NCBI GenBank assembly: GCA_907165135.1
Contig: OU015568.1
Coordinates: 1,364,001-1,428,000, forward strand
Source of the DNA: Oikopleura dioica
Taxonomy: Eukaryota; Animalia; Chordata
DNA: 64,000 bases
Direction of reading: 5' to 3'
The position numbers and the translations under genes are program-made. Below the pieces are notes generated by a model, which did no database searches, was not told the DNA's origin, and saw nothing but the letters and a program-made list of their open reading frames with translations. Of this stretch, positions 28,130 through 34,483 are shown one piece after another. Position 1 is the stretch's first letter. Each line of letters opens with the position of its first letter.

Positions 28130-29160
28130 TTAGTTGTAGATTTTCTTGACATCATCGTTTGGTCTTTCGCCGAGAATGATGTACCTAAAATAAGGGAGTC
28201 TTAACCTAATTTGGCTAATTCGCAGCTTACATTTCTTCGCGGATATCTTCAGTTTCAGTCCAAGTTCCTTTCATATCACAGGGTTTTTGACCCTCGTCAT
28301 TCGTGCACTAGAATTACAGTTATTGAATTTCAGTGCTTTCTGTTCAGCTGTGAGTGTAGATTCTACACTGTAGAATTTTACCTTTGGATGAATTCCAGCA
28401 GCGATTAAAAGTCTGGCAGTGGGTCTTGGATCCCAGCAGGGGATATCCTCCTGTTATCAGTATTGCTCAAATTGCTCCCATTTTAATTGATAGCACTGCT
28501 AATTGAGCATCACGTGCCTGGAGAAGCATATGAAGGAGACTATTGCCTGGTCCTGATAGCACTTTTGTATCAGCGCCAGCGGAAATCCAACTTTTGTGTT
28601 GAAAATCTCACGTTTTTTTCTTGAGAATTTTTATTGTATTATTTAGTTTTGAGAAAGTTCTTTCGGTTTTATTCGGAGATTTCAATACCTTTGAAAGCGG
28701 ATACGCAGGCAGCAGGATCCTTTCGAGTTAAAATCGCCTCCTGAATGGGAGTGAAACCTTATCCGCGATTCGGAACCCCTTTTTTCAAAAGTTTTGGCAC
28801 GTTAAGGATTTCCTGAGGGAAATCCCCTGACACTGACCGATCCAATTTTAACTGGACAGAAAACGTGTGAAATGGAATACAGACAAGATTCAACAGAGGA
28901 ACTCGTCTGCCCGGCATTTTTCGAAAAGTTCGTTCGCGATTCCTGAATGGCATTTTGTATTGATCTCGCCGCCGAATTTCTTAAGGGTATCCAACGTAGC
29001 TCGGACGAGAGGAGCTGGTGATTCCCGAGCAACTCGGCCAAAGACCGTGTATCCGGCGGGGTCGAATTCATTGGCGGTAACCATGGGTTTTCCACGCCGC
29101 GTTTTCTTGAGAATTTCTTCGACCAAATTGGCTTTGCCTTGGCCGGCGCATTCCATCAGC
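28130..29160 (-). CDS. Ankyrin-repeat protein (5' end unresolved)
   Basis: Exon fragments PLQQLMECAGQGKANLVEEIL, NEFDPAGYTVF, SAGADTKVLSGPGNSLLHMLL and TARLLIAAGIHPK|CTNDEGQKPCD resemble ankyrin repeats. Confidence 0.55.
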
Positions 29161-30642
29161 TGTTGGAGAGGGGTTCCTTAAATTTCGCTCGGAAATTAAA
29201 GGAGAAAGATGGTAAATTCTTCTTGTTGGGAGGATTCTGTACCTGTGAGAACCATTTTCTGCGAAGGTGTTTTCTCTTTTTTACACTTGAGGACTGGGCG
29301 AGAACCTCAATCAGGGGCCAGCTTATCGCCCATGCAATGATTTTGGGAGGTACTCATGTATTCAGTCTTCTGGCGTCTTTCAAGGCCATTCATCCCTTTC
29401 ACGTGACCTCGCTTTTCGCACCTTTTCAAGCCGATTTTGAACCGAATAGGCAGTACCTTTTTAGTCTTTCATAAGAAGCTTAAATTTCTCAAAGTCGTTG
29501 AAAGCGCCGATTATACTTTTGAACTGTGTCATTAGAAATTCGAGACAAAGTTCAGAAAATCCGGCTAAAAGACCTTTTAGGAATTATAATGACGTGTCGT
29601 TGAAAGAAAGGGTCACTGAACCTAGGCTTAATTTGAGGACTTGAGCCCTCGCTCGCTTTAAAATTAGAACATTCAGCTAAAACAGATGGCAGGGTGAGAT
29701 CAATTCTAGAGCTTGTTGAAAGCGTGGCGGATAAACCGAAGTATTCGGTGGGTAAACTTTTAGGCCTCTATTACTCGGCTATATGATCACGGACAAGCCC
29801 AGCTTCAAGATCAATTTGATAATCTTAGAATGCTTTTCAGTTTAAGCCTTCTCTCTCTGTAGGTTTTCTTTTCACCTGTGAACTTCACGGTTGAAAGAAT
29901 CGCTATTAACAAAACTACTGCACTGAAAAACTGCGACAACGGAACAATGAAACAAATTGCAACATGAAAATAATCCAACTAGCGTCAACTTCAAAGCCCT
30001 TTTTGTTATTCGAAGCATTAGTAACCCTTCCCCTTCCGTTTCGTCAAGATAAACACTTACTTGTTCTGATCGTCTTTTGCGCTTATCAAAGATTTGTGTT
30101 TTAGAAAGCGGAGTCGACATTCTAAGTCTAATCCTCTCGGAAGTTCCCCTCTTCTCGCACACGTTCGCTCGACTTGACCTCAATAATCCGCCGAGAAAAC
30201 TCAACAACGAGTTCAAACCTGAAAATGCGCGAAATGCTTTCCTAAAACGTGTCTAGGTCCTTTGAGATGCACTTTTGTCTACGAACTTTGAAAACGGGAT
30301 GCCACTTGTTTTCTTAGAGTCGGATTAAATCTAAGCTAGCCACGAGATAGATTGCGCCCTGCACTCATTATCTAAGTCTTGTCCTTTCTATACTATTTGT
30401 CCGGATTTTCCGGGGATAGGATGATTTGTCCGTTTTAGTTTATAATCTTCCCTTTCTACCCAATTTGGCAATTAGATCTTTTCCGCCTTACTTAATTATC
30501 ACGCTGCGGGATATGTTGCCACGCTTCCTGTGGGAGTTTAACGAAGCAAAATCAGGTCAAAATGTTCAATATTTGTCAGGGTTTCTCGTATATAAGCAGA
30601 ACAGTTCCATCGTTAACCATTTCAGAATTTCTTTTTATAAAT

Positions 30643-31665
30643 ATGGGCAATGAAAACAGTACTGCTGACAAATGCTGGCACAGCCTTACATTGAATCAGA
30701 GATATAAGTGGTACAACACGAAAGAATGGCCGATAGAGATTCAAGACCCTATCCTTACACCTGAACTTAGGGAAAATCTTGATGCTATTATTGATAAATT
30801 AAAAGCCAGAAACGATTTCAGCATCATATTTTTCAACAGCTTAAATTGGATTCAGTTGTGCGGGGATACTTACGGGTCCAAAGTCGATGGAGTGAAGAAG
30901 AAGACATCCAAAGACGAATCAAAGAAGTCATACAACTACGGCGATGCTGATATCTGTCATCAAAGAGGAGTCGTTCTTAATTTTGATATGTTGCCTCATG
31001 AGTGCCCCTATGCGATTACTTATTTCATATTGACGAATGAAATGATCTCTAGTTTACTTCTCAAAGAAGAAAGTAACGCACGTAAACTAGGGCCAGTTGA
31101 GGATTGGACTAAGCTCCTTTTTCATCATTCTAATTCTGTTGTTAATCGTTCAAGTATTATGCCAGAGGAGAAATTCGATGAAAAATTTGACTTCTCTAGC
31201 GGACGAAATAAGTATTATCGCAAAAATTTGCTTCATTCTTATTTCAAGTTTTTGCGAAACACGAAAACGCATTTCTTCGAGCATACAAGAATAAACAAAT
31301 TTCAAGAACTATTATTTCGTGGTATAACTACGACAAAAGACATTCAAGCGAGAATTTGCGCACTTCCAAAGCTTGAAATGTTCTTGCTTATAGCTCAAAG
31401 CTATATTTTTAAACGAGATGACATTCATCTCTTCGTCAATTTCAAGCCAGAGGCTTACAAAAGAGTCAATGTTGTTAATTTTGTAAGCGTCATCTTAATT
31501 TTGCTTGATTATTTCTATGAGATAAAACCATCCAAACAACTTAAAGAAGCCTTGAAAAAAATATTCATCGTCGTATATGGTACTTTGGATATTGAAAACC
31601 CGTGCATGGTTCCAACCAGGGCGAAAGATGCCAACATCGCGTCGTCTGAAATTAATTCAATTTAA
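30643..31665 (+). CDS. Intronless 340-aa protein with a putative KEN/RNase L-like ribonuclease motif
   Basis: Longest uninterrupted complete CDS in the window. TTTCAG at 30620-30625, then an MGNENS start; internal DWTKLL...YYRKNLLHSYFKFLRNTKTHFFE. The functional call is inference. Confidence 0.7.
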   Translation: MGNENSTADKCWHSLTLNQRYKWYNTKEWPIEIQDPILTPELRENLDAIIDKLKARNDFSIIFFNSLNWIQLCGDTYGSKVDGVKKKTSKDESKKSYNYGDADICHQRGVVLNFDMLPHECPYAITYFILTNEMISSLLLKEESNARKLGPVEDWTKLLFHHSNSVVNRSSIMPEEKFDEKFDFSSGRNKYYRKNLLHSYFKFLRNTKTHFFEHTRINKFQELLFRGITTTKDIQARICALPKLEMFLLIAQSYIFKRDDIHLFVNFKPEAYKRVNVVNFVSVILILLDYFYEIKPSKQLKEALKKIFIVVYGTLDIENPCMVPTRAKDANIASSEINSI

Positions 31666-32035
31666 TTTCAGATATGAAAATTTAAATTGTTGATTATAAT
31701 TGTACATTTCGTAAAAATATATTTCAATTCGCGTTAAAATTTTATATATATTTTTTTTGTTTTTCTTTCTTAGATTCAATTATTTTGTTAAACGTGTATA
31801 AATTAGAGCTTTGATAATTTTTTGTCCGTTTTTTTTTATCAGACGACTCCTCTGATTCGAACTCAACTTCACAAATGGTGGCGCTGTTAACTCTTCGGAT
31901 CAACCTCGGTGAGTCGCAAGCGCACTCTAGAGATTATCGGACTTTGTATAAAATCAGCTTCAAGTCATCAGTTGCTCATTCAATTCAACACAGTTTTTAG
32001 TTTTTGTCCCTTCCAAAAACTCAGATCGCAGAAAA

Positions 32036-32949
32036 ATGAAGCTCTTCAGCGTTTTCGTCATCGCCGCAGTTTCCGCCCAAGGATTCGACGCCAAAGTTGC
32101 CAAGTAAGTTCCATGAGAGATATATTTTCAAAGAAAAGTGTTGAAAAAATGAGTCCTGAAAACTAATTTCACAATTTTAGCCTCGCCAGAAATGTGGATT
32201 TGAGCGAGTCCGATGAAGACCGACAAGCCCGATTCAAGCAGGAATGCAAATCGACCATTGGCAACAAGCAAGACACTCCCAAGTTCAAGGAGAAGCTCAA
32301 TGCTTGCATGGACAAGAAGAACGCCAAGCACGCCAAGCGAGTTGCGAAGGCCGAAGCTGCTGCCGATAGAGCTGAGATGAAACAGAAAGTCAAGGCTAAG
32401 AAGGCCGAGAAGGTTCCAATCAAGGTAACATAGATTTTTTTCAACCCCCTTTTTTATCTCCATTTTTTTTAGGAAGAGCGAGCTTTCTGCAAGAACGCCT
32501 GCAAACAAATCGCCAACCAGATCACAAAGGCCAACTGTCTTTCTTGGTGGAAATACTCTACCAGGTAACAAGAATTATCTTCTTCGCTGATTTTAACCGC
32601 ACATTTCAGAGTCCAGATCCAGGAGATTTTGGACGAAATTATGGAGATCCGAGACCCTGCCCAGCGAAACTCTGTCGAACACTGCTACACCAAGTCTGGC
32701 TTGAGCGGATCTGAGAGCACTTGCAAGGTAAGACCTTTCTTTCAAACACCAGACGACCCCTTCTTCAATCGTTTGCTTCATTCTGACAACCATTTTCAGG
32801 ACTTCGCCATCGGCTACTGCGACGGTTTGAACCTTGCCAAGCCCTCCCCGATCCTTCGAGACTGCAAATCCTTCTGCATCAACGAGTGCATGGAAGCAGG
32901 CGAGACTTGCTCCTGGACCGAGGATGATTTCGACGGCGAGCAAAAGTAA
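32036..32949 (+). CDS. Secreted Cys-patterned lineage-specific protein (oikosin-like candidate)
   Basis: MKLFSVFVIAAVSA signal, five exons with GT-AG introns, C-ending codon bias and C-x3-C motifs. Confidence 0.75.
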
Positions 32950-33366
32950 ATTTGATAAAAGTTTCTTTGCACCAATAGTTAATTTTACTCTGTAATCTGC
33001 TTTTAACATTCTTACTAATTCTGCTTCTCTATCTTTCCCTATTTCTAAATCTCTCAGAATCGTGACTGAAATAACCGACTGTACTCAATGATTCTTTTCT
33101 ACGAAACTCTTTTCGGAAGAAAAGAACAGTCAAGGTCACAAGAAACCCTCCTTCCCCCTCTCTTCTTTGAATTCACGCAAATTGCAACCACACTGTATAT
33201 TTCTCTCTGAACGAGAGCAGAAAATTGAATATGAAAAATGTACTTTCTATTTTCTCCTGTCCGAGAATCTGCCTGTGATGATAGTGACATGACAATTTTC
33301 TGATCTCAAGTAAATAAACAAAAATCGCAAAAAAAAGTCAAGTTTATAAATTTTTATTGAGACGGA

Positions 33367-34483
33367 TCAGTACAAAGTATGAAAACAGTTGTATAAATAA
33401 AGGCTTTCAACTAACTTGATCTGGGAGAATCCCAAGAGTAAGGCAGCATTTCGACCATCCCAACGAGTAGTACTCCAATTGATCGCTGAATTTTGGCGAC
33501 GATGGCGGATTGGAACCTGGTTTTCGATCAATGCAACTAGAATTTTTGATACTTTCATAATGTAAAAGCAAAGCTTACAGATCAGCACATCCCTGCTGCT
33601 CGTTTGGGCTGCAATTTGTCGAGCACCAGTTAGGATGAATTATTGTTGATAGATTGTTGCAGCTCTTGTTTTCCTTTCTTCTGTCGTCTAGCAAGTATCT
33701 TTCCCAAAAGTCTGTGTTCTTTCCAGCGATGCTGACAGCAAATGCTCCTTGTTTATTTTCCCCGCAATCGTCGTTTTCCCAGCCGTAGTCTTCCACTGGG
33801 TAATTTCCATCGCCACCGCAGTAGGAGAACCAAATTCCGGGGCCATCAACGGACTCGCCGTTGAGTTCGGAGAATCGGGCCGTCGCAGCGCTGTAGTAAG
33901 CCCAGTATGCATCAGGGATGCAATTAAGATCTGCATTGATTGGTGGACTAAAAAGAGTATGGACTCTGGAAAATGTGATGAGACTTACGCATGGAAGGTA
34001 TTTTCAGTATCACTAAATCGGCTGTCAGAAGGATGAGTTACCGCCCACATGAATTCTACCCAGTCCGGTGCTGGTCGACCTCTTTAATTTCGATGATTTG
34101 AATTTTCTATGGAGAAAGCTCCTACCTTACCTGTCCGTATGTTTCACGACAAAAACCGATGCAGTTTTCCCCTTGTCATCCGCATATTCTCCGCGAAAAC
34201 ACGAGTTTTCTCCTTGATTGCATCGAAAATACGATTTTCCTTGACTATTGCTGTAGGAAATAATCAAGAAATTTGAATTGTCTGTCCAACCAGCATTTTG
34301 AAGTGATTCCTGAAAATTTCAAACCGGTTTCTCTTAGGGAAAACTCACTTTGATGCCCCATGTGATTTCCCATTTCGTCGCCCCATATTTTATCATAAAC
34401 TCTGCCACATTCGCCACATCAGTTTTCCAATCTGTCGCTGAAACCTGTAAAAATTTAAAAGCCCAAAAAATTAAACTATTCAT
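33367..34483 (-). CDS. Putative secreted protein, unknown family
   Basis: MNSLIFWAFKFLQVSA start. Exons join in frame (…WGIK|ESLQNAGW…KHTDR…YCGGDGNYP…VALIENQVP…TLY*). Confidence 0.55.

Follow-up and report, generated by a model that had tools for sequence, protein, structure and literature searches.

KEN-domain nucleases such as IRE1 and RNase L are textbook ribonucleases (RNases) that are switched on by dimerization of their kinase domains. Copies of the KEN domain without a kinase lead one to ask what controls such an enzyme when the kinase switch is gone; we know of no kinase-less KEN copy of Oikopleura that has been tested at the bench. This question is raised by an open reading frame (ORF) of the chordate Oikopleura dioica, located at positions 30643–31665 on the forward strand of a 64-kb window, i.e., the whole stretch of 64,000 nucleotides analyzed here (contig OU015568.1, positions 1,364,001–1,428,000; assembly OKI2018_I69, Okinawa lineage). 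An earlier reading, made from the sequence alone, had taken this ORF, hereafter the query, to encode a kinase-free KEN/HEPN-type RNase. The kinase-free part of that claim holds, and a KEN-like character is likely at the level of sequence profiles, but the query has no direct match in Pfam and the predicted fold gave no confirmation. The best explanation, to which a probability of about 0.6 is given, is that the query is a kinase-less and very divergent stand-alone KEN-domain gene of an expansion already known from Oikopleura.

That expansion was described by Anantharaman, Makarova, Burroughs, Koonin and Aravind, who listed "solo RNase L in Oikopleura", treated the kinase-less (solo) KEN genes of O. 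dioica as a lineage-specific expansion, and suggested an antiviral-type conflict role for lineage-specific KEN expansions (Biol Direct 2013; PMC3710099). Theirs is the only paper mentioning both Oikopleura and the KEN domain that the literature search found. The query, being kinase-free and KEN-like, likely falls in this expansion and is likened to the 2013 set by description. The sequence-only reading had called it possibly undescribed, which does not hold for the kind of gene: solo KEN genes and their expansion in O. dioica were already published. What appears to be new within this kind is a more divergent, unannotated KEN subfamily with its own N-terminal extension.

Relationship to the KEN domain

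An exhaustive phmmer search of 1.84 billion representative sequences returned just two matches to the query, both from marine metagenomes. The first, P0001, is a 362-residue protein encoded on a 1,469-bp Tara Oceans scaffold, with a library-wide expectation value (E) of 1.6e-7. Since it aligns across query residues 30–307, with 25% identity and a pairwise E of 1e-13, it is a full-length homolog. The second, P0002, is a 92-residue fragment from a Joint Genome Institute (JGI) metagenome (E of 4e-7 against the query). The genome searched comprises 64.28 Mb in 19 contigs, and the family profile found one paralog there. This paralog, L010, is a single-exon ORF of 376 residues on another chromosome, at C5:12028163–12029290 (L010:1411–2538, minus strand) with a genome-wide E of 1.3e-3. 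Absent from the public proteins, it contains YNGQNFLAYFELMRNFREH, FLPSAYSF, and EHDIHQF at positions in register with the query. Family A denotes the query, L010, P0001, and P0002, and A4 the alignment of all four. A word-index homolog search came back blank with the query alone and returned only P0001 with a three-sequence alignment, and two scans of metagenome contigs for the query family gave no relative.

KEN domains recognizable in the same genome provide the reference for the comparison. A six-frame search with the Pfam model PF06479 (Ribonuc_2-5A) detected seven places (at least seven are present, several of them kinase-less), and the query was not among them. L002 is the canonical IRE1 KEN domain, with 101.5 bits. 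A second kinase-plus-KEN gene, L003 (G000:C2:7601309–7601605, minus strand), lies on the same contig at a distance of ~340 kb and shows a Pkinase C-lobe (27.7 bits) followed by a KEN domain (37.9–39.7 bits). The remaining five places are weaker and include the tandem pair of kinase-less single-exon genes L005 and L006. The solo KEN set, consisting of P0003–P0008, L005, and L008, is referred to as family B; its member P0003 is identical to L006 (CAG5088187.1, Oidioi.mRNA.OKI2018_I69.PAR.g11769), the tandem neighbor of L005. The family-B profile also matched a KEN-like frame at L014:799–1857 (minus strand; region of G000:C1:16503063–16503371) with an E of 7.3e-8. This frame contains LMIFLRNSHVHF and SFPCLL, has RN..H at its very start and probably an upstream exon, and carries a C-terminal extension of ~250 residues that ends in the hydrophobic stretch SLIFFLLFSFFDIIFAVVSLPF.

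Family A was connected to these sequences by comparisons in both directions. P0001 matched PF06479 with an E of 4.2e-4 and 20.9 bits, under the curated gathering cut-off of 23.3 bits; the match falls on the segment homologous to FKFLRNTKTH of the query. The paralog L010 gave no match to the same model. When the family-A profile (A4) was used, L005 and L006 scored 18.4 and 14.0 bits, values that 0/1000 shuffled sequences reached, and the corresponding numbers were 1/1000 for L008, 2/1000 for L003, and 9/1000 for the IRE1 domain of L002. Conversely, with two KEN-like profiles built without family A, the query scored 8.5 bits (reached by 1/1000 shuffles) and 9.3 bits (2/2000). The scores of P0001 were 12.1 bits (0/1000) and 11.6 bits (0/2000), respectively, and these matches always sit on the Y..RNxxxH segment. 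Comparison of family A with KEN-like profiles in hhalign gave P values of 3.3e-4, 2.9e-4, and 3.6e-4 over 63–78 columns, with a probability of 37–40%; the real score was 36.6, versus 24.3 for the best of 44 column-shuffled controls. Finally, a three-sequence family profile compared with 177,635 PDB sequences touched only two at E ≤ 10. Both are IRE1 chains, matched at the KEN core with E values of 1.7 and 3.4 that are not significant by themselves.

The residues aligned by these comparisons are those expected of a KEN domain. The KEN-like region, a putative member of the HEPN superfamily by hhalign, by HMMER with shuffles, and by the alignment A7, spans residues ~125–310 (31015–31572, forward strand, as for all features of the query); its borders are approximate, having been taken from the alignment to the solo KEN genes. 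The segment EDWTKLL...NKYYRKNLLHSYFKFLRNTKTHFFEH to which the earlier reading had pointed is indeed present, with Asp154, Trp155, Tyr191/Tyr192, and Arg205-Asn206-Thr-Lys-Thr-His210. Asp154-Trp155 (31102–31107) corresponds to the DW in the KEN domain of IRE1; in P0001, the match to the KEN-like profile begins at the DW of P0001 itself. Tyr192 (31216–31218), 13 residues before Arg205 in the alignments and HMMER matches, corresponds in position to the catalytic Tyr in the KEN domain of IRE1 (Y892 in human, Y1043 in yeast); this position is Tyr in L010 and Phe in P0001. Residues 205–210 (31255–31272) form the R-N-x3-H motif, an instance of the Rx4-6H motif of HEPN domains. The R205, N206, and H210 columns are invariant in alignments with 7 and 11 KEN-like sequences, and the conservation of RNxxxH among homologs extends to P0001 (RNKHQH) and L010 (RNFREH). 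Leu241-Pro242 (31363–31368) corresponds to the F-P that KEN domains conserve and is placed, as in L005 and L006, at +37/38 relative to the Arg, and the P242 column is invariant or nearly so in multiple alignments with KEN-like sequences.

Similarity to family B continues outside this core. In A7, the query is colinear with family B from the MxxNxS start, via a helix that reads ISSLLLKEES in the query and LLSDE in family B, to the C-terminal helices. Another alignment, A1, made with MAFFT, had paired FFNSLNWIQL of the query with the kinase/KEN junction of IRE1 (HPIFWNS); this pairing was rejected as spurious, the richer A7 pairing ISSLLLKEES with the LLSDE helix instead. Residues 1 to ~120 (30643–31002) form a family-specific N-terminal extension defined by the alignments. 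It comprises the MxxNxS start, a conserved FFxSLxWIQL block, and a Lys-rich linker that is probably disordered, and it has no Pfam match and contains no known domain.

Several observations weigh against a KEN assignment or against an active KEN enzyme. The query protein itself had no match at E ≤ 10 in Pfam, PF06479 included, so it does not reach the cut-off of that model; none at E ≤ 10 among PDB sequences; and none in NCBIfam or PADLOC. The paralog L010 does not score against the KEN profiles (equalled or exceeded in 63/1000 and 1784/2000 shuffles), a four-sequence family profile no longer matches the IRE1 chains of the PDB, and the family-B profile missed the query locus in a genome-wide six-frame search in which scoring was limited to six candidates. 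Every significant KEN score is confined to ~30–80 residues around one motif, and within that stretch P0001 carries Phe at the putative catalytic Tyr position. The gene is also missing from public annotation. Structure prediction was of no help: AlphaFold models of the query had a predicted local distance difference test score (pLDDT) of 33 from the single sequence and of 41.8 from a 12-row multiple sequence alignment (predicted template modeling score of 0.34, all-alpha), and are unreliable. That alignment contained the stand-alone families A and B, canonical IRE1 rows being excluded to limit circularity. Foldseek with the pLDDT-41.8 model found nothing in the PDB at E ≤ 0.001 and no KEN or HEPN structure. 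A homodimer prediction for residues 140–320 scored 0.00 with an uncertain fold of the partner and is not evidence either way.

With these results in mind, the core motif could also be read as convergence or chance, the query then being a lineage-restricted orphan unrelated to KEN/HEPN whose Y...RNxxxH...LP pattern arose in a helical protein rich in K, L, I, and N. Such an orphan would be expected to lack a match to any curated family, to leave AlphaFold and Foldseek without result, and to give a blank in the ESM Atlas, where a feature search with the whole protein and with residues 140–320 found no usable match; the hhalign probability of just 37–40% would also fit. RNxxxH by itself occurs in 2.8% of composition-preserving shuffles of the query protein, and the motif alone is therefore a lead, not evidence. 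A Tyr 12–13 residues before R-N-x3-H, as in the query, arises in 0.24% of shuffles, and the composite Y-x12-RNxxxH-x30-[FL]P in 23 of 200,000 (0.012%). Moreover, the Pfam KEN match of P0001, the reciprocal HMMER scores, the hhalign null, and the PDB matches to IRE1 only all agree on the same segment and register, and the colinearity with family B runs past the motif, from the MxxNxS start to the C-terminal helices. An unrelated orphan is therefore regarded as unlikely. The tests have Oikopleura KEN-like sequences in common, so that they are independent of one another only in part. Nevertheless, several modest results taken together favor descent of the C-terminal half of the query from a KEN domain over chance resemblance, and such descent is considered quite probable, more so than the full reading of the gene given above. 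Other HEPN families gave zero signal for the query in Pfam (at E ≤ 10), PADLOC, and NCBIfam.

The gene and its origin

The coding sequence announced by the earlier reading is present: an uninterrupted ORF of 1,023 nt at 30643–31665 runs from an ATG opening MGNENS to a TAA stop and comprises 340 codons plus the stop. The frame free of stops extends over 389 codons, and only one frame in the window is longer. Given the base composition, ~0.002 frames of this length would be expected in the 64.3-Mb genome on both strands. The gene had also been described as intron-free, which is borne out insofar as the ORF is uninterrupted; the absence of introns is read from the open frame, not from transcripts.

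The protein is absent from public collections: neither the 340-residue version nor a 367-residue version from an upstream ATG has an entry in a collection of 15 billion sequences, and no representative there is more than 50% identical. The public annotation thus lacks the gene. RNA reads came from three oligo-dT runs and one single-cell run, all labelled as the same species. Over the 5.5 kb of 28500–34000, each run gave 2–15 reads, none on the ORF and nearly none on the neighbors, and these are 90–95% alike to the window; the runs evidently derive from a divergent O. dioica lineage. Because of this divergence and the near-empty neighbors, the read test says nothing about expression of the query. 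The only part of 28500–34000 covered by reads is 33100–33467, where the differences T>C at 33108, G>T at 33265, and G>A at 33280 are fixed.

Missing annotation and the lack of reads on the query, neighbors being near-empty too, would be accounted for if the ORF were silent or decaying, i.e., a duplicate that died recently or a relic that, though unexpressed, is still open. An open run of 389 codons is, however, not expected without selection in DNA of 36% GC, the other five frames across the stretch carry 11–34 stops each, and relatives at only 25–37% identity retain open frames of similar length. A dead ORF is thus very unlikely, and the query appears from its sequence to be a real, single-copy, single-exon gene of O. 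dioica, the exon count being read from the ORF alone. At the DNA as well as the protein level, the locus occurs once in the genome, the exception being 200 bp upstream of the gene (30092–30291), which are 74% identical to G000:C1:2645129–2645338 (minus strand) and look like a short dispersed repeat.

An M-x-x-N-x-S start is common to families A and B, with MGNENS in the query, MESNSS in L010, and MKKNAS and MKRNKS in P0003–P0007. The alignment of these N-termini favors the ATG at 30643 as the genuine start codon. A TATA-box-like octamer, TATATAAG, was read from the sequence at 30589–30596 (forward strand), 54 nt upstream of this ATG, and may represent the core promoter of the query. The TTTCAG noticed in the earlier reading was located at 30620–30625 (forward strand), 17 nt before the ATG and ~30 nt past the TATA-like octamer; its candidate functions are those of a trans-splice (spliced-leader, SL) acceptor, a cis acceptor, or an initiator. 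The next gene on the same strand probably starts near 31876, ~210 nt past the stop of the query. Among ORFs of at least 75 residues within ~4 kb on each side, none had a significant Pfam match and none matched a kinase.

Retroposition or transfer had been proposed as the origin of the gene, and neither found support. No poly(A) tract lies 3' of the ORF, no flanking repeat makes a convincing case for a target-site duplication, and no relative turned up among viruses or prokaryotes. A T-rich direct repeat of 19 nt (30425–30443 and 31821–31839; 89% alike, spacing of 1,396 nt) does bracket the ORF, but is probably due to chance and not a target-site duplication, because no poly(A) tract adjoins it. 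Nor was any sign of transposon cargo seen: the ORF is not flanked by terminal inverted repeats, and its locus occurs once save for the upstream repeat. The scan of viral contigs gave no relative of the query, and neither it nor the phmmer, PADLOC, and NCBIfam searches gave any viral, bacterial, or archaeal relative, so transfer from these sources is without support. The solo KEN genes L005 and L006/P0003 are likewise single-exon; a single exon is therefore a trait of the expansion rather than a sign of recent retroposition or transfer of the query.

The Tara scaffold encoding P0001 (L009) has 37% GC. Upstream of the P0001 ORF (L009, 197–376), 52 nt initiated by an ATG lead to a GT, followed by 128 nt that end in TTTTTCAG, and the phase fits the ORF. 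This arrangement suggests that P0001 is a eukaryotic gene with one 5' intron, probably from another appendicularian. The deposited gene call begins at a TTG, and its 5' end is probably wrong. As for L010, it lies tail-to-tail with an ABC-transporter-like open frame (GHNGAGKTTT) on the opposite strand, with 5 nt between them.

Proposed function

Under the preferred reading, i.e., a divergent stand-alone KEN gene, the product would be a soluble protein of 340 residues in which the N-terminal extension (residues 1 to ~120) precedes a divergent KEN domain (~125–310). The latter would be a circularly permuted HEPN-type RNase domain like that of IRE1 and RNase L, with no kinase, pseudokinase, ankyrin repeats, or lumenal sensor. 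By analogy with other KEN/HEPN enzymes, the protein would dimerize and thereby juxtapose two R-N-x3-H motifs, and the dimer would cut single-stranded RNA in a metal-free reaction that leaves a 2',3'-cyclic phosphate. His210 would be the general acid/base, with Tyr192, Arg205, and Asn206 holding the scissile phosphate in position and stabilizing it.

All four of these residues are present in the query, and R, N, and H are invariant over family A and the aligned KEN-like sequences, as expected of a maintained active site. This conservation makes it improbable that the query is a KEN-derived pseudo-enzyme or regulator, which would cut no RNA and would act as an RNA-binding module or as a heterodimer with IRE1 or another solo KEN protein. 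Such a loss of activity would be in keeping with the extreme divergence that renders the query invisible to Pfam, with the loss of the gating kinase, and with the Phe that replaces the putative catalytic Tyr in P0001; in the 2013 survey, HEPN domains without the motif were regarded as non-catalytic RNA binders (PMC3710099).

As the kinase scaffold gating dimerization is missing, an active enzyme would need means of control other than those of IRE1 and RNase L. Control of the query may be exerted through expression, the N-terminal extension, localization, or a partner. As regards localization, the earlier reading had noted an N-myristoylation consensus, and MGNENST does fit a permissive PROSITE-type pattern. 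Gly2 is, however, absent from L010 (MESNSS) and P0001, and P0008 begins with MGK, which has a disfavored Lys3. Myristoylation is therefore not a family feature, and the membrane anchoring claimed earlier is unsupported; N-myristoylation with anchoring is possible in the query paralog only.

The likeliest role, following the 2013 reading of such expansions (PMC3710099), would be to act in conflicts with viruses or mobile elements or to degrade RNA upon stress. A bolder version of this scheme can be put forward by analogy, and is doubtful: family A might be an active, self-dimerizing KEN RNase in which the N-terminal extension replaces the kinase switch, with the query placed at the membrane by N-myristoylation and acting as a kinase-independent, RNase L-like antiviral or anti-transposon effector. 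If the extension did act as the switch, this would show regulation of a KEN nuclease without any kinase scaffold. To our knowledge, Oikopleura is a chordate without an interferon/OAS system.

As a single finding, the query is incremental, since its kind is already known and its function, fold, and expression are predicted at most. Among the branches of the kinase-less Oikopleura expansion recovered here, family A appears to have diverged furthest; it was missed by both Pfam and public annotation, and the expansion would therefore be larger and older than domain scans suggest. It also extends to relatives in marine plankton metagenomes.

Comparison with known KEN and HEPN systems

The closest counterparts of the query are the solo KEN genes of the same genome. 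Like L005 and L006, it is small, single-exon, and kinase-free. The Y-x11/12-R-N-x3-H core of the query recurs in family B, as do the [FL]-P at positions +37/38 relative to the Arg, the acidic block "CD..D(E/I)" that follows this [FL]-P, the MxxNxS start, and the C-terminal helices, which are colinear. Yet, the sequence identity is only 15–19%, and family B scores 18.9–24.3 bits with the Pfam KEN model, at or near the cut-off, whereas the query gives no score. The query is also 60–70 residues longer owing to its own N-terminal extension (FFxSLxWIQL and the Lys-rich linker), contains an insert of ~30 residues between DW and Tyr, and is unannotated.

In the KEN domain of IRE1 (ERN1; PF06479, structures 2rio, 3fbv, and 4pl3), the catalytic Tyr, Arg, Asn, and His are spaced as in the query, and so is the F/L-P helix that comes after them. 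In addition, the corresponding region of the query is predicted, at low confidence, to be all-alpha, and IRE1 chains are the sole PDB sequences touched by the family profiles. The two proteins differ in that the query lacks the lumenal sensor, the transmembrane segment, and the kinase domain that drives back-to-back dimerization; its sequence is too distant for the Pfam model, and the canonical IRE1 KEN domain is encoded elsewhere in the genome (L002).

RNase L, a KEN-type RNase used in antiviral defense, likewise has R-N-x3-H. In contrast, the query has no ankyrin repeats and no pseudokinase, and hence no module for sensing 2-5A. The earlier statement that kinase motifs and ankyrins are absent is correct: VAIK, HRD, and DFG do not occur, and no Pkinase or Ank model of Pfam matched at E ≤ 10. 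No orthology with RNase L is implied by the shared motif.

More broadly, the metal-independent endoRNases of the HEPN superfamily that use Rx4-6H include Las1, Cas13, Csm6, and HepT toxins. The query resembles this superfamily in having Rx4-6H with a polar residue after the Arg, and a composite active site formed by a dimer would be expected for it as well.

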